Source: Obrimoposthia wandeli (taxonomy: Eukaryota). From it: a stretch of DNA of 64,000 nt. Position numbers and translations under genes: made by a program. Below are positions 38,474 to 59,833 of this stretch, one piece after another. The stretch is taken from assembly GCA_977020255.1 (NCBI GenBank), contig CDROCS010000253.1, positions 1,488,001 to 1,552,000 on the forward strand, in the 5' to 3' direction. The notes under the pieces were generated by a model that saw only the letters and a list, made by a program, of their open reading frames with translations, was not told where the DNA came from and made no database searches. Numbering within the stretch: position 1 is the first letter of the stretch; every line of letters begins with the position of its first letter.

Positions 38474-39925
38474 TTAAAGATTGATACTCTGATAATTAGT
38501 ATAACTTCCGATTGAGGTTAATTTTACTAAGGTTTGCCTGTCTTCATTAATTTCAACCGTGATGGTGCGACTGTTACCGTTAATGGTCAATTCTACTTCT
38601 TGTTGGCCAAGTGCTAAGTCTAGTCGTAGTATATGAATGCTATCGGGTAGCGTACTCCAACTTCGAGTATCTGCTTTTTCAGATGCTATATTGTAAAGTC
38701 CGGCTAAAATATTACCTACATCACCACCTTTGCGGCTCATTTGTTGTCTAAGTTCTTCCTTAGCAAAAAGACGCACAACTTGTCTGGTGACAATCGCTGG
38801 CATTTCATCTTGTAATTGCTTAGCGGCAAGAGATTGTAAGCGGACAATTTCTTGAGACTGATAGGTATTGCCTTGATAGTTTAATGAGAGCCCTGAGTAT
38901 TGGCGTAAGCGGTTTTGGTAACTAGGTAAAGCTAAACTGTAAAAGCGCACATCGTTATGGCTAGTGAAAATGGGCAGATGGATGGATACTTCCTGTTTAC
39001 TCGGGATGATGCCTTGTTCAACAAGAACAACAAGCTGGCCACTTTTAGTTAAACTTTTTCGGTTATCAATGACTTGGTTATTACTTTGGGTAATCTCATT
39101 AGAAAAACGGTTGCCGTATAATTGAATGTCATTGGTCATGCCAAGCTTCGTAGCCAAGCGCCATACATCTTTTTGCACGGTTACGTTGTGAGGGTAAATT
39201 TCTAATGCTTTTTTATAGTCTATATAAGCATCATTGGCTTGTCCTGCTGCTTCATAAAGTACGCCAGATAAGTAAAAGGTGTAGGCATTTTGAAAACCAT
39301 TTTTTACTTTGCCAATGGCGGTATCCATGGATGGATATTTACTTGCTAAGCTTTCAGAACTAACACCTTTATTTGTCATTTCTTTTTGGTTGTCATAAAG
39401 CGCTTTTTGATTGGCTTGTAAGGCTTTTTTTTGTACCAAATTCGCGCGTCGTATTTCAACTAATGCACCTGAGAGATCGTTTTGGTTTAGGTAATTAAGT
39501 GCTTGGTAACAATGCAGCATGCTTTGTTCATAATAGGGAATGTCGTATCGGATTGCGCTATCGTTACTTACTATTGCGGTAACATTTTCTACGCTTCGGC
39601 TGAGTTGGATCTTGGCTGCTTGCTCTGTTTGCTGAACTTGCCGGTATACCCGGTCAAAGTCTTGCTGACTTTCGCTGTGGTTACTGGCAAGAAACTCTAA
39701 ACGAGCTTTTTCTAATAAACTTAAGGCATAACTACCATTGCTTTCACTACGCTCAGATATCAGTGAGACTGCTTGTTCGAAGTTACCTCGTTGCTGGGCA
39801 CTCTTTACGCCTTGCATCTGTTTATTGTAGTTACTAAATAAATCACCAAATGAGGTGCCGGCACAAGCACTTAGCGCGAGTGAAAGTAGTATGATTATTG
39901 GAACTTTGAAAGAAATATTGAGCAT
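38474..39925 (-). CDS. COG3014-family TPR lipoprotein
   Basis: Lipobox LSAC; YEQSMLHCYQALNY, AYIDYKKA and ADTRSWSTLP motifs; usual partner of ycfL-lpoB. Confidence 0.75.
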   Translation of the reverse strand: MLNISFKVPIIILLSLALSACAGTSFGDLFSNYNKQMQGVKSAQQRGNFEQAVSLISERSESNGSYALSLLEKARLEFLASNHSESQQDFDRVYRQVQQTEQAAKIQLSRSVENVTAIVSNDSAIRYDIPYYEQSMLHCYQALNYLNQNDLSGALVEIRRANLVQKKALQANQKALYDNQKEMTNKGVSSESLASKYPSMDTAIGKVKNGFQNAYTFYLSGVLYEAAGQANDAYIDYKKALEIYPHNVTVQKDVWRLATKLGMTNDIQLYGNRFSNEITQSNNQVIDNRKSLTKSGQLVVLVEQGIIPSKQEVSIHLPIFTSHNDVRFYSLALPSYQNRLRQYSGLSLNYQGNTYQSQEIVRLQSLAAKQLQDEMPAIVTRQVVRLFAKEELRQQMSRKGGDVGNILAGLYNIASEKADTRSWSTLPDSIHILRLDLALGQQEVELTINGNSRTITVEINEDRQTLVKLTSIGSYTNYQSINL

Positions 39926-40243: not shown

Positions 40244-40576
40244 ATGATGGATAAACGAGTGTGGCTCTTTATGGTAATGAGCCTGTGTATAAGTACAAGT
40301 CAAGTACAAGCTAAAGATGTCATTGTTGAAATATACAAGAAGCAGTTTATTCCCAGCGAAATAACGATTGAAGCTGGCGATAGAGTGATTTGGAAAAATA
40401 TTGAAAAACGTCAATACCACAATGTTTGGTTTAAAGGCTCAGGTGAAGAAGAACCTGATTATTTTTTTCCTGATGAAAGTTATCAGCGTAAGTTTGATCA
40501 GTCAGGTAGTTTTGCTTATGAATGTGGCCCACATCCTAAGATGAAAGGTAGGGTTATTGTTACAAATTCTGAGTAA
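40244..40576 (+). CDS. Periplasmic type 1 copper protein (cupredoxin/plastocyanin family)
   Basis: Signal peptide; HNV plus C-G-P-H-P-K-M supply the His/Cys/His/Met ligand set. Confidence 0.88.
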   Translation: MMDKRVWLFMVMSLCISTSQVQAKDVIVEIYKKQFIPSEITIEAGDRVIWKNIEKRQYHNVWFKGSGEEEPDYFFPDESYQRKFDQSGSFAYECGPHPKMKGRVIVTNSE

Positions 40577-40608
40577 TAACCTTAGAAAAGTTATTGATAT
40601 AAGTCTTG

Positions 40609-40660
40609 CTACAAAAAGGCTATAACCCTAATTTAACTGGGGTTATAGCCTTTTTTGTAG
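40609..40660 (+). terminator. Terminator between the cupredoxin gene and norC
   Basis: ctacaaaaaggctataaccc…ggggttatagccttttttgtag inverted repeat with T run. Confidence 0.75.
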
Positions 40661-40749
40661 TTAAATAAGTTAATAATAAATGCAGATTTTTTGATATAGC
40701 GCAAAATTGTTTCTAATTATGTAACTATTTATTACAACCCCTTGAAAAC

Positions 40750-40763
40750 TTGATTTCCATCAA
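40750..40763 (+). promoter_or_regulatory. FNR/DNR-family binding site upstream of norC
   Basis: Perfect TTGAT-ttcc-ATCAA; a TATTAT -10 element at 40786-40791 fits class II spacing; a weaker site TTGAT-atag-CGCAA lies at 40691-40704. Confidence 0.85.
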
Positions 40764-40843
40764 GTTGCTTACTAAGCTTCCTCGCTATTATCTACTGGCT
40801 TTATAAAAAACTTACGCATGAACTATTTCATTAAGGAAACACC

Positions 40844-41290
40844 ATGTCAGAGAGCTTTACTAAAGGCATGGCAAGGAATATTTATTACGGTGGAAGTATA
40901 TTCTTCTTCTTAATATTCTTAGCTTTGACTTTTCACACAGTAAAAGAGATGCCCAAACGGGATAATCGAGAAAATATTACCGAAGCAGTTGAACGCGGTA
41001 AACACTTATGGGAAAAAAATAACTGTATTGGTTGTCATACGCTTATTGGTGAAGGCGCATATTTTGCTCCAGAACTAATGAATGTTTATGACCGTCGCGG
41101 CGGTGGTAATGAAGTAGCTTTTAAAGCTTTCTTAAATGGTTGGATGAATGCTCAGCCATTAAACATTCCAGGTCGTCGTCAAATGCCTAACTTCCACTTA
41201 AATGACCAAGAAATTGATGATTTAGCTGAGTTCCTTATATGGACATCAAAGCTAGACGCCAATAACTGGCCACCAAACATTGAGGGGTAG
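40844..41290 (+). CDS. norC: Nitric oxide reductase cytochrome c subunit
   Basis: N-terminal TM helix (ARNIYYGGSIFF), heme motif CIGCH, GEGAYFAPEL, GRRQMPNF. Confidence 0.96.
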   Translation: MSESFTKGMARNIYYGGSIFFFLIFLALTFHTVKEMPKRDNRENITEAVERGKHLWEKNNCIGCHTLIGEGAYFAPELMNVYDRRGGGNEVAFKAFLNGWMNAQPLNIPGRRQMPNFHLNDQEIDDLAEFLIWTSKLDANNWPPNIEG

Positions 41291-42685
<1,395 letters not shown>

Positions 42686-42724
42686 TGTAAATATGTCTTA
42701 ATACATTGTGTATGTTGACTAACT

Positions 42725-42756
42725 AAAAAACCGTGACTGTGTCACGGTTTTTTTTT
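42725..42756 (+). terminator. Terminator directly after norB
   Basis: aaaaaaccgtgac-tgt-gtcacgg followed by nine T. Confidence 0.9.
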
Positions 42757-43070
42757 GCGTTTATTTTATTGATTTATTTTTTCTAAATACAATAAGATCA
42801 TAAGCTTATTGATTCATTGTGCTATGTTTTTAAAGTTAGCGTTTATTGGACATTATTAAGAACATTAATATTGGCATGGTATGAATAATCACAGCCAGCT
42901 ATGTGGTAAATGAGTTGCAAATAAAGTGATCTTAATCGCTTAAGTTAGCGTATGTAAGTGATAGTTGAAGTTGACAGTATAACGCTGTGTTTAAACGTTA
43001 ATTTAGCCTTTAACTTAATTCTAATTTAGCAAGAATAATCATTAAAACAGACTTAAGGTAACCGAATAGG

Positions 43071-44213
43071 ATGTTCAAAAAAGCAATTGTACTGCTCCAA
43101 GATTACCTAAATCATTTAGGTTTTAAGGCTCAAATTCACTTTGAGTTAGAAGGTTGTTATAAAACTACTGATAATGGCAAGGCAATTAATCTTCAAGCTA
43201 TTAACGATGCTTTATCACTGCTGGATATCGATGGTGAGGTTGTTAATGAGTATTGGAAAAATCAATGGGAGTATGTTTCTTTATTCAATGGTCAGTCCCC
43301 ACTTCAAGAAGCAGATAACTTAGTCCATGCTATCAATCATCTTCCTGCTATATTCGCTCAACATGGCATCACTGAAACGTTAATTCAGCCAGTGGTTTGG
43401 TCAGGTGATCAAGGAAAGTTAGCGGTAGGTTGTCATGATATTTTTACGACAGACACTCGAGCTGTCCATATACCAAACGCCATACAAATCAATGTCAGTG
43501 TTATTAACGATCAGGGTGTTAATATTATTTCGCATAATGGCTTTGGTGAGTACCTACAGCAATGTTTTTTGCAAACGAGCAAAGCATGTAGTTTGTTGTA
43601 TTTGCCTGAAGAAGAAGCCTTTGAACGTTTAAAACTAAAATCCTACTACGGTTTAGCTGAAGAGCTTTGTTCCCCCTGCGATATTTCTGGTGGACATCAA
43701 GGCAGTATTGCGCTGTATAAAAAATTAGGTAAGCATAATCAACAAATGGGTGAAGAGACATTATTGTTTGATCAACACAATAAGATACTGGTTACCGAAC
43801 AAAATTGGCAGAAAACAGCACGTATAGAACATAGGTTAGGGGCTTCAAGCAAGTTTTATAACCCGCACGCTAATGTGTTATTTGCCTTAATAAATGTTGT
43901 TGATGCTATTGATGCCTATCGACAAGAAAACTTCCCTTCAAATTTAAACTATTCAGCACAAACCATTGAATTACCTAAGTCATTATATAACCAATCCCAA
44001 GAAAAACATGATGTTGTTGAGGACTCTCCAGGTGCTATTGAACTATTTACGCGTTGTGATTGGTTTAGTGAGGGAGTCAACAAAGTGCAACAGTTCATGA
44101 ATAAAATAGATAATGATAGTCACCAAGCCAATTGTTTAGGTGACTTAGTGAAACAACAAATTCTCGATAAATATCAAACTAAAAAAATAGTATTACCTAT
44201 TAATTTTAACTAG
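43071..44213 (+). CDS. Divergent glutamine synthetase / gamma-glutamyl ligase catalytic-fold protein
   Basis: Ordered motifs FELEG (ExE), EYWKNQWEY (E..QxE), HIPNAIQINVS, EAFERL and RIEHR resemble the GS/GCS2 metal and ATP-binding motifs. Family assignment is by eye. Confidence 0.65.
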   Translation: MFKKAIVLLQDYLNHLGFKAQIHFELEGCYKTTDNGKAINLQAINDALSLLDIDGEVVNEYWKNQWEYVSLFNGQSPLQEADNLVHAINHLPAIFAQHGITETLIQPVVWSGDQGKLAVGCHDIFTTDTRAVHIPNAIQINVSVINDQGVNIISHNGFGEYLQQCFLQTSKACSLLYLPEEEAFERLKLKSYYGLAEELCSPCDISGGHQGSIALYKKLGKHNQQMGEETLLFDQHNKILVTEQNWQKTARIEHRLGASSKFYNPHANVLFALINVVDAIDAYRQENFPSNLNYSAQTIELPKSLYNQSQEKHDVVEDSPGAIELFTRCDWFSEGVNKVQQFMNKIDNDSHQANCLGDLVKQQILDKYQTKKIVLPINFN

Positions 44214-44243
44214 CGTAAGTAATACGTAATAAGGCGGCGCTTT

Positions 44244-46502
44244 ATGAATAGTAACCAATATAACGAATTAAATGAGCCTAAATCACCAGCGTTAACTGGC
44301 GAGTGTGTAAAGAAAAAACGAGCAGAATTAAAAAGCTACTTTAAAGCAACGTGGCAACGCTATGATTCATTGTTTTCATTGATCAATCATGATGAGGCCT
44401 TTTACCAAAGGCCTGAGCCATTAAGACATCCATTGATTTTTTACTTTGGGCATACAGCCTGTTTTTATGTCAATAAGCTCATTTTAGGTAAATATATCGA
44501 TGAGCGAGTTAACCCTAGAATTGAAGCTATCTGTGCTGTTGGTGTAGATGAAATGAGCTGGGACGATCTTAATAGTGCTCATTATGATTGGCCAACGGTT
44601 GATGAAGTAAGAGCATACCGACAAAAAGTTTTTAACGTTGTTGATAATATTATTGACACTATGTCGCTAGTATTGCCCCTTACACAAAATTCATTAGCGT
44701 GGATTATTTTAATGGGCTGTGAACATGAGCGCATTCACATTGAAACATCTTCTGTGATTATGCGTATGTTGCCATTAGCCTCATTAACGCCGAATGAATG
44801 TTGGCCTACTTGTCAGCAAAGCAGTAGCGCACCAAGTAATGCATTAGTATCCGTTGCAGCAACAGTTATTAACTTTGGTAAGCCGACTTCGGACGATAGC
44901 TTCGGCTGGGATAACGAATATGGTTGTGCAAGGTTGGCCTTAGATGACTTTCATGCGGCAAAATATTTAGTGTCTAATGAAGAGTTTTTGAGCTTTGTTG
45001 AGTCAGGTGGTTATCAAAAAAATCATTTATGGACTCAAGAAGGTCAGCAATGGCTGGCCTTTAGCGAAGCAACGATACCACGCTTTTGGTTGAAGCAATC
45101 GGGAGAATATTTGCAGCGAAACTTATTAAATGAAATGCCTTTGCCGCTTGATTGGCCTGTAGAGGTAAATTACCTAGAAGCAAAAGCCTTCTGTAATTGG
45201 AAGAATAGTTTACATGATCAAAGCATAAGTAATGATGGCTTAATCAATAAAGGTAATAAAGGCCATTATAGATTGCCTTCTGAAGGTGAATGGCTGTCTT
45301 TACGAGAGCAAGTAGCAGGTGACTTACCATCATGGCAGAAAGCACCAGGTAATATTAATAGTGAATACTTTGCTTCTTCTTGCCCGGTAAATATGTTCGA
45401 ACAAGGTGATTTTTACGACATTATTGGTAATGTGTGGCAATGGACAGAGTCTGCTATTGATGGTTTTAATGGTTTCTCTGTTCACCCCTTATATGATGAC
45501 TTCTCTACACCAACTTTTGATGGTAAACACAATCTCATTAAGGGCGGCTCTTGGATCTCGACAGGTAACGAGGCGATGCAAAACTCTCGTTATGCTTTTC
45601 GCCGACATTTCTTTCAGCATGCAGGTTTTAGATATGTTGTAAGTACAAATGAGAACGTACCTAACTTAGCCGATAATCACTATGAAACTGATATTTATGT
45701 TTGCCAACAACTTCATCATCATTTTGAGCAGCTGACTGCGTTGAGTGTTTCGATATCAGCAGAAGAGCAAAAAAACAGTAAGGAGCAGAGCCTAACTACA
45801 AGAGAACAACCGCTAGCGAGTCATTACTTAAAAATACTCGCCAACACTATTATTAATGCCGTTGATAAATATAACGGTACACCCCTGCCTAAATGTCTCG
45901 ACTTAGGGTGTAATGTGGGAGGTTTAAGTTTTATTTTGGCTAAGTATTGTAAGGCTATCGATGCGGTTGATTTTTCTGCCAGATATATTCAATACGGCGT
46001 AAAACTACAACAAAATGAATCGGTACGTTATGTCATGCCTCGTGAGGGGGAGTTAATTGATTTCCATGAATTTACTATGCCTGCTGAATTCAATGATGAG
46101 TCAAAAAAAATCCACTTTAGCCAAGGTGATATTAGTAATTTAAAAAACATTTTTACTGGTTATGATCTTATTGTCGCACAAAACATTTTAGAGCAAAGTT
46201 ATGACCCCGCTTTATTTTTGGAACAGGTATATCGACGTCTGAATACACAAGGTATTTTGGCTATTGTTTCAGATTATCATTTCAATGAAAAAGTCACTGA
46301 TAAAAGAAAATGGTTAGGAGGACAGAAAGTAAATGGTGAAAATGTGACCGGTTTTGAAGCATTAACAACTATGCTGTCCAAAAAATTTACCTTGGTTAAT
46401 CAACAAGAAGTAACACAGATAATTAAGACCAATAAACGTCACTTCACGGTGGCTCAATCTCACTTAACAATATGGCAATTAAACAAGGATAACTCGCATT
46501 AA
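44244..46502 (+). CDS. ovoA: 5-histidylcysteine sulfoxide synthase with C-terminal methyltransferase domain (ovothiol synthase)
   Basis: DinB_2 domain (LRHPLIFYFGHTA, GVDEMSWDD, HERIHIE = HX3HXE iron ligands); FGE-like domain (GWDNEYG, GNVWQW, GGSWISTGN, RYAFRRHFFQHAGFRY); SAM motif LDLGC. Confidence 0.92.
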   Translation: MNSNQYNELNEPKSPALTGECVKKKRAELKSYFKATWQRYDSLFSLINHDEAFYQRPEPLRHPLIFYFGHTACFYVNKLILGKYIDERVNPRIEAICAVGVDEMSWDDLNSAHYDWPTVDEVRAYRQKVFNVVDNIIDTMSLVLPLTQNSLAWIILMGCEHERIHIETSSVIMRMLPLASLTPNECWPTCQQSSSAPSNALVSVAATVINFGKPTSDDSFGWDNEYGCARLALDDFHAAKYLVSNEEFLSFVESGGYQKNHLWTQEGQQWLAFSEATIPRFWLKQSGEYLQRNLLNEMPLPLDWPVEVNYLEAKAFCNWKNSLHDQSISNDGLINKGNKGHYRLPSEGEWLSLREQVAGDLPSWQKAPGNINSEYFASSCPVNMFEQGDFYDIIGNVWQWTESAIDGFNGFSVHPLYDDFSTPTFDGKHNLIKGGSWISTGNEAMQNSRYAFRRHFFQHAGFRYVVSTNENVPNLADNHYETDIYVCQQLHHHFEQLTALSVSISAEEQKNSKEQSLTTREQPLASHYLKILANTIINAVDKYNGTPLPKCLDLGCNVGGLSFILAKYCKAIDAVDFSARYIQYGVKLQQNESVRYVMPREGELIDFHEFTMPAEFNDESKKIHFSQGDISNLKNIFTGYDLIVAQNILEQSYDPALFLEQVYRRLNTQGILAIVSDYHFNEKVTDKRKWLGGQKVNGENVTGFEALTTMLSKKFTLVNQQEVTQIIKTNKRHFTVAQSHLTIWQLNKDNSH

Positions 46503-46704
46503 TGACAAAAAAAGAGAAGACTATAGCGCTTTTTATAAATAGTAACAGTTGGTAGTAATAGATACGTTAAAAGAGTCTGTATCACCTGTTCTTACTAAGT
46601 TCCTTAGACGCCAATAGTCATTGTAAAATGTAAAGCTAATGTCGTATTAGATACTAATAACAATGCTTATGGCTTTATTGTTTTCTTTTTAGCCTAAACA
46701 GCTG

Positions 46705-46718
46705 TATAATGCGCGCCC
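46705..46718 (+). promoter_or_regulatory. Probable typA -10 element with GC-rich discriminator
   Basis: TATAAT-gcgcgccc. Confidence 0.55.
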
Positions 46719-46784
46719 AATTATAGTCCAATTCGTTTGTCTGCTTAAAGTAGCGGTCAACGACAGTAACAGCGAGTAAAGCCT

Positions 46785-48602
46785 GTGTTAGATAAATTAA
46801 GAAATGTGGCAATTATTGCTCACGTTGACCACGGAAAAACCACTTTAGTTGATAAATTATTAGAGCAGTCTGGTACCCTAGATACGCGTGGCGGTCTAGA
46901 AGAACGTACGATGGATTCGAATGATATCGAAAAAGAACGTGGTATCACAATCTTAGCTAAAAATACAGCTGTTAACTGGAATGGCTACCGTGTAAACATC
47001 GTAGATACTCCTGGCCATGCTGATTTTGGTGGTGAAGTTGAGCGTGTAATGTCAATGGTAGATTCAGTTTTACTTATTGTTGATGCACAAGAAGGCCCTA
47101 TGCCACAAACGCGTTTCGTAACGAAAAAAGCGTTTGCTCAAGGTTTAAAACCAATTCTTGTTATTAACAAAGTTGATAAGCCTGGTTCTCGTCCTGATTG
47201 GGTTATGGACCAAGTTTTTGAATTGTTTGATAACCTTGGCGCTACAGATGAACAGCTTGACTTTAAAGTTGTTTACGCTTCAGCAATCAATGGTTGGGCT
47301 TCGTTAGAAGAAGGCGTCACTGGCACTGACATGACTCCTTTATTTGATACTATTATTAAAGAGGTTCCACAACCAATCGCTGATCCAGAGGGTGCATTTC
47401 AAATGCAAATCTCTCAACTTGATTACAACTCGTACTTAGGTGTAATTGGCGTTGGTCGTATTACCCGTGGTTCTGTTAAGCCGAACCAACAAGTAACGAT
47501 ACAATTAGCAAACGGCGGCGTTCATAACGCTAAAGTAGGTAAAGTATTTGGTTATTTAGGACTAGAGCGCCTTGATATCGCTGAAGGTTTTGCCGGTGAT
47601 ATTATTGCAATTACTGGTTTAGGCGAATTAAAGATTTCTGATACGATTTGTTGTCCTACAGAAGTTGAAGGTTTACCTGCATTATCTGTTGATGAACCAA
47701 CTATCAACATGACTTTCCAAGTAAACACTTCACCATTTTGTGGTAAAGAAGGTAAGTATGTTACTTCACGTAACATCAAAGACCGTTTAGACAAAGAATT
47801 GATTCATAACGTTGCTTTACGTGTTGAACAATTAGAAGATGCTGATAAATTTAAAGTATCAGGTCGTGGTGAACTTCACTTAGGTATTTTAATTGAAAAC
47901 ATGCGTCGTGAAGGTTTTGAATTAGCGGTATCACGTCCAGAAGTTATTATTCGTGAAATTGATGGTCAGTTACAAGAACCATATGAAACAGTAACGATTG
48001 ATGTTGAAGAACAGCATCAAGGTCCTATCATGGAGAAGATGGGTGTTCGTAAAGCTGAATTAACTGATATGGCACCAGATGGTACAGGTCGTATTCGTAT
48101 GGACTTCATCATGCCTAGCCGTGGTTTGATTGGTTTCCAAACTGAATTTATGACATTAACGTCAGGCTCTGGTTTGATTTATCATACTTTCTTTGAATAC
48201 GGACCTCATAAGGGTGGCGAAATTGGCCAACGTAAAAATGGTGTAATGGTTGGTAATGCAACTGGTAAAGCACTAACTAACGCTATCTTTAACTTACAAT
48301 CTCGTGGTCGCATGTTGATCGGACACGGTGTTGATATTTATGAAGGTCAAGTTATTGGTATTCATAGTCGTGATAACGATTTAACAGTAAATGCCCTTAA
48401 AGGTAAGCAGTTAACTAACGTTCGTTCATCAGGTACTGATGAAGCACAAACATTAACGCCACCTATTGTTATGTCATTAGAGCAAGCATTAGAATTTATC
48501 GATAACGATGAATTAGTAGAAGTAACACCGCTAAGTATTCGTATACGTAAAAAATTCTTGAAAGAGAATGATCGTAAACGTGAAGGTCGTGGTATTAAAT
48601 AA
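46785..48602 (+). CDS. typA: Translational GTPase TypA/BipA
   Basis: [35 protein letters not shown] and DELVEVTP motifs. Confidence 0.98.
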
Positions 48603-52857: not shown

Positions 52858-52876
52858 TTCACGGGAGTAAATGGTT

Positions 52877-53266
52877 ATGATGACTGATCCTATCGCGGAC
52901 ATGTTTACACGCATCCGCAACGGTCAATCTGCAGCAAAAGTTGCAGTACAAATGCCATCTTCTAAAGTTAAAGTTGCGATTGCAACTTTGCTTAAAGAAG
53001 AAGGTTATATTTCAGAGTTTTCAGTATCAGGTGAAGTAAAACCTGAACTAGCTGTAACGTTGAAGTATTTTGAAGGTAAAGAAGTAATTGAAAAGATCAA
53101 ACGTGTTTCACGTCCTGGTCTTCGTATATACAAAAGCTGTGATGAACTTCCTAAAGTTCTTGCAGGTATGGGTATTGCGATCATTTCAACTTCTAAAGGT
53201 TTGATGACGGATCGTGCCGCTCGCTCTGCGGGTATTGGCGGTGAAGTTCTTGGTTTCGTAGAGTAA
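52877..53266 (+). CDS. rpsH: 30S ribosomal protein S8
   Basis: [28 protein letters not shown]; start 52877 chosen from RBS spacing (52871 also possible). Confidence 0.97.
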
Positions 53267-53276
53267 GGAGAATAAT

Positions 53277-53810
53277 ATGTCTCGTGTTGCAAAAGCACCT
53301 GTCGTTGTTCCTGCTGGCGTTACCATTACGTTATCAGGTCAAGACATTACAGTTAAAGGTCCAGTAGGCGAATTATCTCGCACGATCCACAGTGACGTTG
53401 TTGTTTCTCAAGAAGAAAACAACATCATTACTAATATCGTTGCTGATGTTAAAGGCGCTTGGGCTCAAGCCGGTACTACACGTGCTTTAATCAATAATAT
53501 GGTTGAAGGTGTTAGTAAAGGTTTTGAAAAGAAATTAGTTTTACAAGGTGTTGGTTACCGTGCCAAAGCTGCTGGTAAGTCTTTAGATTTATCTTTAGGT
53601 TTTTCACACCCAATTAAACATGCGATTCCTGAAGGAATTACTTGTGAAACTCCTAGCCAAACTGAAATTACACTGAAAGGTTGTGATAAGCATTTAGTTG
53701 GTCAAACCGCTGCGAACATTCGCGCATACCGTAAACCTGAGCCTTATAAAGGTAAAGGTGTTCGTTATGTTGATGAATACGTTCGTCGTAAAGAAGCTAA
53801 GAAGAAGTAG
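53277..53810 (+). CDS. rplF: 50S ribosomal protein L6
   Basis: [20 protein letters not shown]. Confidence 0.98.
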
Positions 53811-53819
53811 GGTAATACT

Positions 53820-54173
53820 ATGGATAAGAGAACATCTCGTTTGCGCCGCGCTAAACGCGCTCGTGCAAAAATTAGCGAGTTGGGTGCGAATCGTTTAGTT
53901 GTATTCCGTACTCCTCGTCACATTTACGCTCAATTGATCGCTCCTACTGGATCTGAAGTAATTGCATCTGCATCTACTTTAGACAAAGAGCTTAGTGCTG
54001 AGATTGAAAAAACAGGTAATGTTGCAGCAGCAACTGCAGTAGGTAAAGCAATCGCTGAACGTGCTGTAGCAAAAGGTATCACTAAGATAGCTTTTGATCG
54101 CTCTGGTTTCCTTTACCATGGTCGCGTAAAAGCGTTAGCAGAAGCAGCTCGTGAAGCTGGTCTTCAATTCTAG
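53820..54173 (+). CDS. rplR: 50S ribosomal protein L18
   Basis: [27 protein letters not shown]. Confidence 0.98.
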
Positions 54174-54182
54174 GGGTTGATA

Positions 54183-54692
54183 ATGGCTAATCATAATCAA
54201 GAAAACTCACAGCAAAGTGATATGGCTGAAAAGCTAATTGCCGTTAACCGCGTTTCAAAAGTGGTTAAAGGTGGTCGCATATTCAGTTTTACTGCACTAA
54301 CAGTAGTTGGTGACGGTAATGGTCGCGTTGGTTTTGGTTACGGTAAAGCACGTGAAGTGCCTGCTGCAATCCAAAAAGCAATGGAAAAAGCGCACCGTAA
54401 CATAGTAACGATTGACTTGAAGGGTACTACTCTTCAACATGTTATTACTGGCAAACATTCTGGTTCTAAAGTCTTCATGAAACCAGCTTCTGAAGGTACA
54501 GGTATCATCGCCGGTGGCGCGATGCGTGCAGTACTTGAAGTTGCAGGCGTTCAGAACGTATTGTCAAAAGCATACGGTTCTACTAACCCAATCAACGTAG
54601 TTCGCGCTACTGTTTCTGCCCTAGTGAATATGCATTCACCAGAAGGCATGGCAGCTAAACGTGGCAAACGCGTTGACGAAATTTTGGGGTAA
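54183..54692 (+). CDS. rpsE: 30S ribosomal protein S5
   Basis: [20 protein letters not shown]; start corrected to ATG 54183. Confidence 0.98.
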
Positions 54693-54698
54693 TTGAGA

Positions 54699-54878
54699 AT
54701 GTCTAAAACAGTTAAAGTAACTCAACTAAAAAGTTCTATTGGTCGTTTACCGAAGCATAGAGCTACATTAAAAGGCCTTGGTCTACGTCGTATCAATCAT
54801 ACAGTTGAGTTAGAAGACACTCCATCTGTACGTGGTATGATTAACAAGGTTTACTATATGGTTAAGGTGGAGGATTAA
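54699..54878 (+). CDS. rpmD: 50S ribosomal protein L30
   Basis: [21 protein letters not shown]; start at ATG 54699. Confidence 0.97.
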
Positions 54879-54880
54879 TT

Positions 54881-55315
54881 ATGCATTTAAATACTTTATC
54901 CCCTGCACCGGGATCTCACAAAGCTAGAAAACGCTGTGGTCGTGGTATTGGTTCAGGCATCGGTAAAACTGGTGGTCGTGGTCATAAAGGTCAGAAATCT
55001 CGTTCTGGCGGTAGTGTACGTCCAGGTTTTGAAGGTGGTCAAATGCCATTGAAACAACGTTTACCTAAATTTGGTTTTACTTCACGTAAATCTTTAGTTC
55101 GCGCTGAAGTTCGTTTACACGAATTAAACCTTATCACTGGTGATGTTGTTGATATTCATGCACTTAAAGACGCTGGCCTTATTACACGTAATATCGTAGC
55201 TGTTAAAGTTATGTTATCTGGCGAAATTACTCGTCCAATTACATTACGTGGTATTGCAGTAACTAAAGGCGCACAAGCAGCTATTGAAGCTGCTGGTGGC
55301 AAAATAGAGGAATAA
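54881..55315 (+). CDS. rplO: 50S ribosomal protein L15
   Basis: [30 protein letters not shown]. Confidence 0.98.
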
Positions 55316-55321
55316 TACACA

Positions 55322-56659
55322 ATGGCTACACCAGGAATGGCTGCTTCACAAGGTAGTAAAGGCGCGGGCGGTTTGTCTGAGCTAAAACAAAGATTATGGT
55401 TCGTATTCGTTGCCTTAGTTGTGCTTCGTTTAGGGTCTTTTGTGCCAATCCCTGGTATTGACGCCGCTGTATTAGCTCAGTTCTTTGAACAACAAAAGGG
55501 CACCATTGTAGAGATGTTTAACATGTTCTCCGGTGGTGCACTTGAGCGAGCCTCAGTATTGGCACTTGGTATTATGCCGTACATCTCAGCTTCGATTATT
55601 ATGCAATTGCTCACTGTGGTTCATCCCGCAATGGCAGAGCTTAAAAAAGAAGGTGAAGCTGGACGTCGTAAAATCAGTCAATACACACGCTACGGCACTT
55701 TAGTTCTAGCAACAGTACAATCGATAGCGATTGCCAGAAGTTTACCGGAAATGATGCAAGGGCTTGTTATAAATGCAGGTTTTAGTTTCTATTTCACCGC
55801 AGTAATTAGTTTGATCACGGGTACCATGTTTTTAATGTGGTTAGGTGAGCAAATTACTGAACGCGGTATCGGTAATGGTATTTCGATTATCATTTTTGCA
55901 GGTATTGTTGCTGGCATGCCATCCGCGGTTGGTCAAACAGCTGAAATGGCGCGTCAAGGTGAATTGCACTTATTAGTATTATTGCTTATAGGCGTTGTGG
56001 TATTTGCAGTAACTTTCTTAGTAGTATTTGTGGAACGTGGTCAACGACGTATTGTTGTTAACTACGCTAAACGTCAGCAAGGCCGTAAGGTGTTTGCTGC
56101 ACAAAGTACACATTTACCGTTGAAAGTGAATATGGCTGGTGTTATACCGCCAATCTTTGCCTCAAGTTTAATCTTGTTTCCAGGCACGCTTGCGAGCTGG
56201 TTTGGTCAAGGTGACGGCCCTGTCGCTGATTTCTTACAAGGTGTTTCAGGAGCTATGTCTCCAGGACAACCGTTGTATGTGATGATGTTAGCGGGAGCAA
56301 TTATATTTTTCTGTTTCTTTTACACGGCTCTTGTTTTCAATCCGCGTGAAACTGCAGATAACTTGAAAAAGTCAGGTGCGTTCATTCCAGGGATTCGTCC
56401 GGGTGAACAAACATCCAAATATATTGATAAAGTCATGACACGTTTAACCCTTTGTGGTGCGGCGTATATTACCTTTGTCTGTTTGGTTCCACAGTTTATG
56501 ATCATGGCATGGGACGTACAGTTCTATTTCGGCGGGACATCTTTATTGATTATCGTAGTAGTGATTATGGACTTTATGGCACAAGTACAAACGCATATGA
56601 TGTCTCATCAATATGACAATGTACTTAAAAAAGCGAACTTGAAAGGCTATGGTCGTTAG
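55322..56659 (+). CDS. secY: Preprotein translocase subunit SecY
   Basis: [37 protein letters not shown] motifs. Confidence 0.99.
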
Positions 56660-56689
56660 ACCGAGCTGATTTAGTTAACGGAGTATAAA

Positions 56690-56803
56690 ATGAAAGTACG
56701 TGCATCCGTAAAAAAGATTTGTCGTAATTGTAAAGTGGTAAAGCGTAAAGGCGTAATTCGCGTTCTTTGTGTTGAACCAAAGCACAAACAAAGACAAGGT
56801 TAA
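56690..56803 (+). CDS. rpmJ: 50S ribosomal protein L36 (zinc-ribbon form)
   Basis: Read by hand (not in the ORF track): [37 protein letters not shown], 37 aa. Confidence 0.97.
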
Positions 56804-56954
56804 GCTTAGCTTTTAATCTAATATCTTTTAGAAGTGGCATTATGTAGATTTATCTGTATAATGCCGCTTCGATTTGCAGAAAAAGAGAATGGTTGGGTAT
56901 CCTAACGGGCTTTCCAACCAAAGTAATTTTAATTATAAATAGGAGATGTGATTA

Positions 56955-57311
56955 GTGGCCCGTATCGCTGGCATTAACATCCCTGATCGTAAGCATGCAG
57001 TAATCGCCATTACTGCGATTTACGGTATCGGAGCTACACGTGCGAAAGCAATTTGTGCAGCAACTGGTATCGCTGAATCAACGAAGATCAGTGAATTAGA
57101 CGAAGCAAAAATAGATTTGCTACGCGCTGAAGTGGATAAATTTACCGTTGAAGGTGATTTACGCCGTGAAGTTTCAATGAACATTAAACGTCTTATGGAT
57201 TTAGGTTGTTACCGTGGCATTCGCCATCGTCGCAGTCTTCCTCTACGTGGTCAACGCACTAAAACAAATGCGCGTACCCGTAAAGGCCCTCGTAAGCCAA
57301 TTAAGAAGTAA
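56955..57311 (+). CDS. rpsM: 30S ribosomal protein S13
   Basis: [23 protein letters not shown]; GTG start. Confidence 0.98.
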
Positions 57312-57324
57312 GAGGAACTAGACA

Positions 57325-57714
57325 ATGGCTAAAACACCAGTTCGTACGCGTAAACGCGTAAAAAAACAAGTTGCTGATGGCATGGCTCATATCCATGCTT
57401 CTTTCAACAACACAATCGTGACTCTTACAGACCGTCAAGGTAATGCGTTATCTTGGGCGACTGCCGGTGGTTCAGGTTTCCGTGGTTCACGTAAATCTAC
57501 TCCATTTGCTGCGCAAGTAGCTGCAGATCGCGCAGGCGCTGTTGCAAAAGAGTTTGGTTTGAAGAATATTGAAGTGTTCGTAAAAGGTCCAGGTCCAGGT
57601 CGTGAATCTGCTATCCGTGCCTTAAATGCTGCTGGTTTTAAAATCACCAACATTACTGACGTAACACCTATTCCTCATAATGGTTGTCGTCCTCCGAAGA
57701 AACGTCGCGTTTAA
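57325..57714 (+). CDS. rpsK: 30S ribosomal protein S11
   Basis: [29 protein letters not shown]. Confidence 0.98.
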
Positions 57715-57746
57715 GCGCTTTTTTTTAGGATAGTTGGAGAAAGAAA

Positions 57747-58367
57747 ATGGCTAGATATTTAGGTCCTAAGTTAAAACTTAGTCGCCGCGAAGGTACAGAT
57801 TTGTTCCTTAAAAGCGGTGTTAGAGCAATTGACACTAAATGTAAAATCGAAACAATACCAGGTCAACACGGCGCCCGTCGCGGTCGTTTGTCAGACTATG
57901 GTGTTCAACTTCGTGAAAAACAAAAAGTTCGTCGTATTTTTGGCGTGCTTGAAAAACAATTCAGTAATTACTACAAAGAAGCGGCACGTCAAAAAGGCAA
58001 CACAGGTGAAAACTTGTTACAGCTTTTAGAGACTCGTTTAGATAACGTAGTTTACCGTATGGGTTATGCAAGCACTCGTGCTGAAGCCCGTCAATTAGTT
58101 AGCCATAAGGCTATCGTGGTAAACGGCGTTGTAGTTAATATTCCATCTTTCACTGTTAAAGCTGAAGATACTGTTTCTGTTCGTGAGAAGTCTAAAACTC
58201 AAGCGCGTATCATTGCTGCTTTAGAATTAGCTGATCAACGTGAGAAACCACTTTGGGTTGAAGTAGATACTAAGAAGCTTGAAGGCGTTTTCAAACGTGT
58301 TCCAGATCGTGCTGACTTATCTGCCGAAATTAATGAACAGTTGATTGTTGAACTTTACTCTAAATAG
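57747..58367 (+). CDS. rpsD: 30S ribosomal protein S4
   Basis: [35 protein letters not shown]. Confidence 0.98.
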
Positions 58368-58395
58368 TAAAGTTGCACTTTAAGAGAGGACATAT

Positions 58396-59385
58396 ATGCA
58401 GGGTTCTGTAACCGAATTCCTTAGACCGCGCTTAGTTGGCATTGAAACCATTAGCCCTCGTCGTGCTAAGGTTACTTTAGAGCCACTAGAACGTGGTTTT
58501 GGTCACACTTTAGGTAATGCGTTACGCCGCATTCTTTTATCTTCAATGCCGGGTTGTGCCGTAACTGAAGTTGAAATTGACGGTGTTTTACATGAGTACA
58601 GTAGTAAAGAAGGTGTTCAAGAGGACATCATCGAAATATTGTTAAACCTTAAAGGGCTTGCAGTTATTTTAGAAGGCAAGAATGAAGCCGTTCTTACCTT
58701 AACTAAGTCTGGTGAAGGCCCTGTAACGGCAGCTGATATACAACATGACGGAGATGTAGAAATTGCAAATCCTGAACATGTTATCTGCACCTTAACAGGT
58801 GAAGGTAGTATCAGCATGCGCATTAAAGTTGAAATGGGACGTGGTTACGTTCCCGCTTCTGCGCGCCGTGATGCCGAGGAAGAAGATCGAGCTATTGGTC
58901 GTTTGTTGGTTGATGCTTCATTCAGCCCAGTAGTTAGAATTGCTTATGATGTTGATTCTGCACGTGTTGAACAACGTACAGATTTAGACAAATTAGTTTT
59001 AGATATGGAAACCAATGGTACATTGGATCCGGAAGAAGCTATCCGTCGTGCTTCAACTATTCTTGCTGAACAGCTTGATGCGTTTGTTGAACTTCGTGAT
59101 ATCAAAGAAGTAGAGCAAGTGGAAGAAAAACCATTGTTCGACCCAATCTTGCTTCGTCCTGTTGATGATCTAGAATTAACTGTTCGTTCAGCTAACTGTT
59201 TAAAAGCAGAAGCAATTCAATACATTGGTGATTTAGTACAACGTGCTGAAGTTGAGCTTCTTAAAACGCCTAATTTAGGTAAGAAGTCATTAACTGAAAT
59301 CAAAGACGTGTTAGCGTCGCGTGGTTTGTCTCTAGGCATGCGCCTAGAAAACTGGCCACCTGAAAGCATTGTTGACAACGACTAG
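58396..59385 (+). CDS. rpoA: RNA polymerase alpha subunit
   Basis: [34 protein letters not shown]. Confidence 0.99.
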
Positions 59386-59428
59386 TTCGATCATCATTTT
59401 TTTAACAGTTAGAGAGAAGGATTAACTT

Positions 59429-59833
59429 ATGCGTCATCGTCAAAGCGGTCGCCAGTTAAACCGTAATAGCAGTCATCGTAAAGCGATGTTCCGCAATATG
59501 GCAAGCTCTTTAGTTAAGCACGGCGTTATTAAAACGACTGTAGCTAAAGCTAAAGAACTACGTATGGTAGTAGAGCCATTGATTACATTGGCTAAAACTG
59601 ACAGTGTTGCAAATCGCCGTTTAGCGTTTGCTCGTACACAAGATAAAGAAGTAGTAGGTATTTTATTCAACGAACTTGGTACTCGTTACCAAGAACGTCC
59701 AGGTGGTTACACTCGCATTTTAAAATGTGGTTTCCGTACTGGTGATAAAGCGCCTATGGCTTATATTGAATTAGTAGACCGCCCAGTAGTAGAAGATGCT
59801 CCTGAAGTAGTTGAAGAATCAGCAGAAGCTTAA
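59429..59833 (+). CDS. rplQ: 50S ribosomal protein L17
   Basis: [22 protein letters not shown]. Confidence 0.98.

Follow-up and report, generated by a model that had tools for sequence, protein, structure and literature searches.

An unannotated glutamine synthetase-fold protein encoded immediately upstream of ovoA in marine Colwellia: a candidate partner enzyme for thiohistidine metabolism

The locus described here lies in a stretch of 64,000 nucleotides (nt), referred to below as the window, which spans positions 1,488,001 to 1,552,000 of the forward strand of contig CDROCS010000253.1 in the Obrimoposthia wandeli assembly GCA_977020255.1, and whose carrier is a marine Colwellia. Within it, the gene for OvoA is preceded on the same strand by an open reading frame (ORF) for a 380-amino-acid protein that we call GSL, and it is the relationship between these two genes that concerns us. 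The original prediction for this DNA had placed the two reading frames 30 nt apart with no terminator between them. Both statements hold: a check of the ORFs returned the same pair (43071-44213 and 44244-46502), and a terminator scan found no terminator-like site in the spacer 44214-44243, a strong terminator lying upstream of the pair. The features of the unit, in window positions, are as follows.

43071..44213, + strand: GSL, a stand-alone glutamine synthetase (GS)-fold catalytic domain and putative ATP-dependent carboxylate-amine ligase; ATG start, 380 amino acids (AlphaFold2 model, motif mapping)
44214..44243, + strand: spacer between GSL and ovoA, 30 nt, with an AAGG Shine-Dalgarno-like element
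44244-46502, + strand: ovoA ORF, 752 amino acids, canonical bifunctional OvoA
44283..45638, + strand: N-terminal 5-histidylcysteine sulfoxide synthase domain of OvoA (DinB_2 + FGE-sulfatase), residues 14-465; TIGR04344 at 644 bits against a cut-off of 400, and Pfam
45681..46478, + strand: C-terminal S-adenosylmethionine-dependent N-methyltransferase domain of OvoA, residues 480-745; TIGR04345 at 234 bits against a cut-off of 170
43010..43039, + strand: promoter-like site TTAACT-18-AATAAT, weak (9/12 matches), 31 nt 5' of the GSL start codon
42725..42753, + strand: intrinsic terminator of the upstream haem-copper oxidase gene, a 13-bp stem followed by a T-run

The terminator marks the 5' boundary of the GSL-ovoA unit. 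Promoter-like sites such as the one at 43010 are no commoner in the window than in shuffled sequence, and no Rfam element was found within 42600-46900. From the spacing of the two genes and the conservation of their arrangement (see below), we infer that they are probably co-transcribed. The downstream partner is readily identified: over both domains it aligns with the OvoA structure from Hydrogenimonas thermophila (8khq, E 6e-213), and its methyltransferase domain also matches OvoM (9bxl, 2.4e-37).

GSL itself has escaped annotation. It has no match in Pfam, even at E 10 (this includes PF00120, Gln-synt_C, and the GCS2 profile PF04107), none in NCBIfam, and none among PDB sequences, either by phmmer with the single sequence or with the family profile, which recovered no GS. 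An exhaustive profile search of 1.84 billion representative proteins defined a family of 63 clusters at 50% identity, many of which are fragmentary, with no canonical GS among the matches; a word-index search retrieved 541 proteins, mostly from Colwellia and Thalassotalea, and every named one is "hypothetical". Profile comparisons go a little further. When the GSL family was aligned by hhalign with the single sequence of Escherichia coli GlnA, only the RIExR..NPY segment was matched (probability 0.7%), and in a MAFFT co-alignment the middle part of GlnA was misplaced and PuuA was placed correctly. A diverse GSL family profile compared with E. coli PuuA covered the whole catalytic domain (262 columns, E 4.3e-4), a weak match by its probability of 34%, with all motifs in register. 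The GS-like motifs named at the outset (FELEG, EYWKNQWEY, QINVS, FERL and RIEHR), as well as the segment GHQGSIALY, are all present in the GSL sequence.

The fold is established by the structural comparison. The AlphaFold2 model, based on 25 homologues, shows a confident core (predicted template modelling score 0.77; mean predicted local distance difference test, pLDDT, 71). Foldseek ranked GS at the top (E 4e-9), and VIA aligned 260 residues of the model with GS at Z 19-20.5 and a root-mean-square deviation (rmsd) of 3.3-3.9; taken with the placement of the motifs on PuuA, the resemblance to GS that had been suspected from the sequence is not due to chance. An unbiased structure scan of 48,161 chains ranked the related families by Z against the GSL model as listed here.

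GS-I, PA5508, naphthylamine-GS and GmaS: Z 17.7-20
GS-III: Z 17
GS-II: Z 14.7
Dop/PafA: Z 11-12
YbdK: Z 11.7
Glu-Cys ligases: Z 7.7-11.5
Arginine kinase: Z 6

No ATP-grasp structure was among the matches of the model, and a guanidino-kinase identity was rejected on the scores of arginine kinase (Z 6) and McsB (Z 5.6).

Residues 1-380 of the model cover only residues ~107-442 of GS, i.e. the catalytic domain. As modelled, then, GSL is a GS catalytic domain that lacks the N-terminal beta-grasp domain (Gln-synt_N), and the gene argues for the same conclusion, since the first metal motif begins at residue 24, the frame is closed by a stop four codons 5' of the ATG, and the homologues are longer by at most ~20 residues. 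Clustering of the ORFs at 80 related loci (described below) found no small co-conserved ORF able to supply the missing domain. GSL is the founding member of a small, unannotated family of "headless" GS-fold enzymes.

The active site of this family was compared with that of GS, using the numbering of E. coli GlnA (checked on the GlnA sequence itself) and the metal, ATP and glutamate contacts generally recognized in GS.

E129 and E131 of GS: E25 and E27 of GSL; retained, metal
E212 and E220: E60 and E67; retained, metal
F225: F72; retained, predicted substrate/ATP contact
S273: S143; retained, predicted substrate/ATP contact
R321: R186; retained, predicted substrate/ATP contact
R355, E357 and R359: R251, E253 and R255; retained, E253 a predicted metal ligand, R251 and R255 predicted substrate/ATP contacts
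H269: Q139; replaced, Q139 listed as a predicted metal ligand
H271: N141; replaced
R339: no counterpart; deleted
R344: Y216; replaced

Five of the six metal ligands of GS (E25, E27, E60, E67 and E253 in GSL) are kept and invariant, and the sixth, H269, is an invariant Gln139. Of the phosphate and transition-state arginines, R359 is kept as R255, and R339 and R344 are lost, which agrees with the original remark that the NR..IR segment of GS is replaced: Arg339 is deleted and Arg344 has become Tyr216. The Glu327 flap of GS gives way to a loop that is 8 residues longer. Down to 28% identity, the residues E25, E27, E60, Q65, E67, H133, P135, N136, Q139, S143, R186, K221, R251, E253 and R255 are invariant among GSL members, so that F72 is the sole retained GS contact to vary across the family. 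Since the metal, ATP and glutamate contacts persist over such distances, we read this pattern of sequence conservation as the signature of a working catalyst and not of a decayed domain.

The linkage of GSL to OvoA is equally well established. A species-level genome scan found 125 relatives, of which 80 loci were kept, and the neighbourhood counts given here cover those 80. In 78 of them ovoA lies immediately 3' of GSL on the same strand; in the remaining two the contig ends there. The median distance between the genes is 22.5 nt; it does not exceed 60 nt in 68/76 cases, and sometimes the genes overlap by 4 nt. The flanking genes differ among the loci, and the window's own flanks are common to only the few closest genomes, the closest being that of Colwellia demingiae (strain ACAM 459; GSL 82% and TypA 98% identical). 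A single family, Colwelliaceae, accounts with its neighbours for most of the loci. The most divergent members extend the association to other arrangements. At three loci (L088, L089 and L090; 36-40% identity) GSL lies directly downstream of a gene for a stand-alone OvoA N-domain (TIGR04344 at 448-665 bits, no methyltransferase domain), and at two others (L083 and L084; 32% identity) GSL and a stand-alone N-domain gene are divergently transcribed. In total, five of the six informative divergent members adjoin a stand-alone OvoA sulfoxide synthase gene; one further contig ends too early. GSL is found almost only beside OvoA, and the association spans three gene orders, about 28-40% identity in the divergent members, a GC content of 25-50% and the loss of the methyltransferase domain. 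The conserved pairing anticipated in the original prediction is therefore confirmed by the 78 of 80 loci together with the rearranged pairs, and, because it survives changes of gene order, base composition and methyltransferase content, GSL is likely tied to the sulfoxide synthase step or to its 5-thiohistidine product. We are confident that GSL is a GS-fold enzyme functionally tied to OvoA.

Two kinds of locus show additional features. In two Colwellia metagenome-assembled genomes (L018:7129-7921 and L024:7126-7906), an AT-rich stretch of ~790 nt that is closed in each of the three forward frames separates GSL from ovoA; elsewhere the gap is less than 90 nt. At the divergent loci L089:3465-8040, L088:448-4931 and L084:669-4228, the neighbours include a class III aminotransferase (twice), an enzyme of the BKACE family and, directly after GSL, an FAD amine-oxidase-like protein. 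These extra neighbours may extend the pathway.

What might a headless GS do beside OvoA? Ovothiol is among the strongest natural thiol antioxidants, and the best explanation we can offer, which we advance tentatively, is that GSL is a dedicated, co-transcribed partner of OvoA, an amide ligase that uses ATP to tailor 5-thiohistidine or ovothiol. In the most likely scheme, GSL would remain an active carboxylate-amine ligase, dependent on ATP and on Mg or Mn, that works through an acyl-phosphate. By homology, its acyl donor would probably be L-glutamate. The amine site is probably open to a large amine, because GSL lacks the N-domain of a neighbouring subunit that builds the small ammonium pocket of GS. 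5-Thiohistidine or ovothiol A could then have glutamate attached at its alpha-amine, or an amine attached at its carboxylate, and the product would be a new amide-linked derivative of 5-thiohistidine, the OvoA-branch counterpart of the 2-thiohistidine dipeptides. This particular chemistry is rather more doubtful than the general role. With similar reserve, we suggest that Colwelliaceae and related marine gammaproteobacteria may make a new low-molecular-weight thiol, an amide-linked (probably gamma-glutamyl) ovothiol A or 5-thiohistidine, by means of a new family of N-domain-less GS-fold ligases whose evolution would have been directed specifically to partnership with OvoA.

Several observations speak against this proposal. 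The loss of R339 and R344 and the replacement of H269 by Gln mean that catalysis by GSL could differ from that of a ligase. The active site of GS needs the neighbouring N-domain, which headless GSL does not have. Two active-site loops of the model (residues 107-135 and 176-214) fall below a pLDDT of 50, so that the shape of the pocket cannot be read from it; one divergent member (P0144, at L086) has no OvoA within 8.9 kb; and no gamma-glutamyl or other amide derivative of ovothiol from these bacteria was found reported in the literature. The first two of these points, together with the remodelled Glu327 flap and its 8 extra residues, would suit a GSL that is no ligase at all: a kinase-type or ATP-binding protein serving as an accessory or regulatory subunit of OvoA, or an enzyme of other chemistry that, for instance, phosphorylates the His-Cys sulfoxide or closes an amide within it. 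That GSL accompanies the sulfoxide synthase domain both with and without the methyltransferase domain would fit such a role as well. However, the other metal, ATP and glutamate contacts are invariant family-wide, the pattern of an active GS-type catalyst and not of a scaffold, and we consider a non-ligase function unlikely, if by no means negligible. It can also be argued that the adjacency is inherited synteny within one bacterial family, with no role for GSL in thiohistidine metabolism; most loci do come from Colwelliaceae and its neighbours, and P0144 stands apart from any nearby OvoA. Yet the pair persists in 78/80 loci while its flanks vary, and the association is seen again in three gene orders, one of them with divergent transcription, at 28-40% identity and 25-50% GC. 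The idea of an unrelated neighbour is largely refuted and can hardly be correct.

A further possibility is that GSL acts before OvoA and supplies it with gamma-Glu-Cys, as the original prediction suggested, or with some other pre-modified Cys or His; EgtA supplies gamma-Glu-Cys to mycobacterial EgtB in this way. GSL and EgtA/GCS2 share one broad superfamily of carboxylate-amine ligases, the GSL gene lies 5' of ovoA, and the glutamate-binding residues of GSL are kept. The partner enzyme, however, appears suited to free cysteine. In the structure of OvoA_Th2, L-Cys is in contact with R62, Y68 and the V102 backbone, the metal is bound by H71, H162 and H166, and the lid loop 98-117 closes a small sub-pocket. 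The authors propose that free L-Cys alone fits into this sub-pocket, in contrast to EgtB, whose substrate is gamma-Glu-Cys (PMC10696552). When the window OvoA is aligned with 8khq, R62, Y68, H71, H162, H166, Y406, F409 and T413 are conserved, as is the lid loop 98-117, which is of equal length; the core motifs were found in 75/77 relatives. ORF clustering of the 80 loci found no EgtC-like amidohydrolase co-conserved with GSL-ovoA that could take the glutamyl group off again, and the GSL model is much nearer to GS than to YbdK or the Glu-Cys ligases. Because OvoA keeps its Cys contacts and lid loop, and no such amidohydrolase accompanies the pair, the sequence evidence disfavours supply of gamma-Glu-Cys, and we regard a substrate-supply role as distinctly improbable. 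Tailoring of the OvoA product by an amide ligase, the other option raised in the original prediction, remains the best reading.

The original prediction also stressed that no lyase gene was adjacent to the pair. For the window this is correct as far as it goes: no pyridoxal phosphate (PLP)-dependent lyase, SenB or SenC was found among the scanned ORFs (the ribosomal-protein block 52871-59833 was not scanned gene by gene), and tblastn gave no match in the window for the PLP enzyme of the relatives. It does not hold in general. In 38 of the 80 loci, ORF clustering showed that a PLP-dependent protein of the class I/II aminotransferase fold is encoded directly 3' of ovoA, often overlapping it (e.g. 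L005:8257-9402, L013:9263-10447 and L077:7957-9063), and we therefore take the lack of an adjacent lyase to be a local state of the window genome and its closest relatives. This protein is not an OvoB of the MalY/PatB type. Its nearest models are GntC, VioD and PRK07324, all under cut-off, and the PatB C-S lyase model gives only ~100 bits. The GntC, VioD and PRK07324 models include cyclodehydratases that work by beta-elimination. A non-canonical lyase is plausible from these sequence matches; the enzyme may represent a distinct type of thiohistidine C-S lyase or perform some other chemistry. Clustering of lyase genes with these synthases is in any case uncommon: in a published census, ovoB co-occurred with sulfoxide synthase genes in 4.4% of cases (PMC13674229). 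The possibility that GSL replaces the C-S lyase was rejected, as 38 relatives hold GSL, OvoA and the PLP enzyme together and the chemistry of GS is unfit for the reaction. GSL is additional to an otherwise complete pathway and not a substitute for a lyase.

On the other side of the pair, a TPR-GGDEF diguanylate cyclase of ~600 amino acids is encoded directly 5' of GSL in 48/80 loci (e.g. L004:4179-5951) and is absent from the window. GGDEF proteins are listed at 2.0% among the neighbours of sulfoxide synthases (PMC13674229).

Comparison with characterized systems helps to define what is new in GSL. Its best structural matches (Z 17.7-20) are PuuA, GmaS (7cqn, 9qur), the 1-naphthylamine GS (8wwu) and PA5508 (4hpp). 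With these GS-I-type gamma-glutamyl-amine ligases it has in common the Glu motifs that bind metal, the Arg that binds Glu, and the motifs RxExR and NPY; in contrast to them it has no beta-grasp domain, has lost Arg339 and Arg344, carries the changes H269 to Gln and H271 to Asn, and has no match to PF00120. Their genomic partners are amine-catabolism genes, whereas that of GSL is OvoA. EgtA, to which the original prediction drew attention, is likewise a carboxylate-amine ligase that has no beta-grasp domain, is similar in size and is encoded beside a sulfoxide synthase. The comparison is nevertheless weak: the GSL model is far nearer to the GS-I type (Z 18-20) than to YbdK/GCS2 (11.7; 1tt4, rmsd 4.6) or the Glu-Cys ligases (8-11.5), the GCS2 profile (PF04107) does not match, the OvoA next to GSL appears built for free Cys, and neither EgtC nor EgtD is present. 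PafA and Dop also possess a GS-related catalytic fold without a beta-grasp domain, and use an open beta-sheet cradle and a glutamyl-phosphate intermediate; they differ in scoring only Z 11-12, in acting on proteins and in their setting, the actinobacterial proteasome.

Precedents come from recent work on thiohistidines. ATP-grasp ligases (AshB and TgiB) and one YbdK-like enzyme (TgiB-II) are clustered with sulfoxide synthase genes, as GSL is, and are known ATP-dependent amide ligases; they make 2-thiohistidine dipeptides with glutamate or glycine, reject 5-thiohistidine, and differ in fold from the GS type of GSL (PMC13674229, JACS 2026). 5-Thiohistidine N-acetyltransferase (5THNAT), found through the OvoA neighbourhood, derivatizes the alpha-amine of 5-thiohistidine and differs from GSL in its GNAT fold, its use of acetyl-CoA and its occurrence in Bacteroidota; no other enzymes making 5-thiohistidine derivatives were known when it was described (PMC12631010). 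We found no description of a GS-like partner of OvoA in the literature searched, in keeping with the original statement that no characterized OvoA pathway includes such a ligase. A survey of bacterial OvoA and OvoB does not mention Colwellia or gene context (PMC8433421), and the neighbourhood census of sulfoxide synthases used CDD annotations (PMC13674229), which an unannotated GSL-like protein would presumably escape. Surveys that count only annotated domains miss partners of this kind.

Until 2025 no enzyme derivatizing 5-thiohistidine was known, and the substrates of the ligases described in 2026 are confined to 2-thiohistidine. GSL, a conserved GS-fold enzyme without annotation that is tied to OvoA in more than 100 marine species, offers a testable route to a new thiohistidine metabolite. 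The function assigned here is reasoned from the fold and the conserved pairing and is put forward cautiously. If it is correct, GSL would be the first 5-thiohistidine-specific ligase and a new architecture in the GS superfamily, one that works without the N-terminal domain that usually completes the active site.

The remaining genes around the pair are described for completeness. Downstream of ovoA lies typA/bipA (46785-48602). In E. coli, bipA stands next to the divergently transcribed gene of true glutamine synthetase, glnA; the likeness to the window looks coincidental, because the typA flank is common to only the three closest genomes. Upstream, 40244-42685 holds a cluster for a cupredoxin (110 amino acids), a mono-haem cytochrome c (148) and subunit I of a haem-copper oxidase (463), the last scoring 253 bits with COX1 and only 35 bits with ccoN against a cut-off of 583. 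The layout resembles NorC/NorB, and the product could be a nitric-oxide-reductase-like oxidase. Further upstream, on the - strand (38474-39925), an ORF of 483 amino acids belongs to no Pfam family and has as its sole match a faint ResA-like WAxxUGC model (20 bits against a cut-off of 300). Finally, between ~4000 and 28000, GC-rich blocks (0.45-0.49, against 0.37-0.39 elsewhere) recur every ~6 kb, consistent with several tandem rRNA operons.

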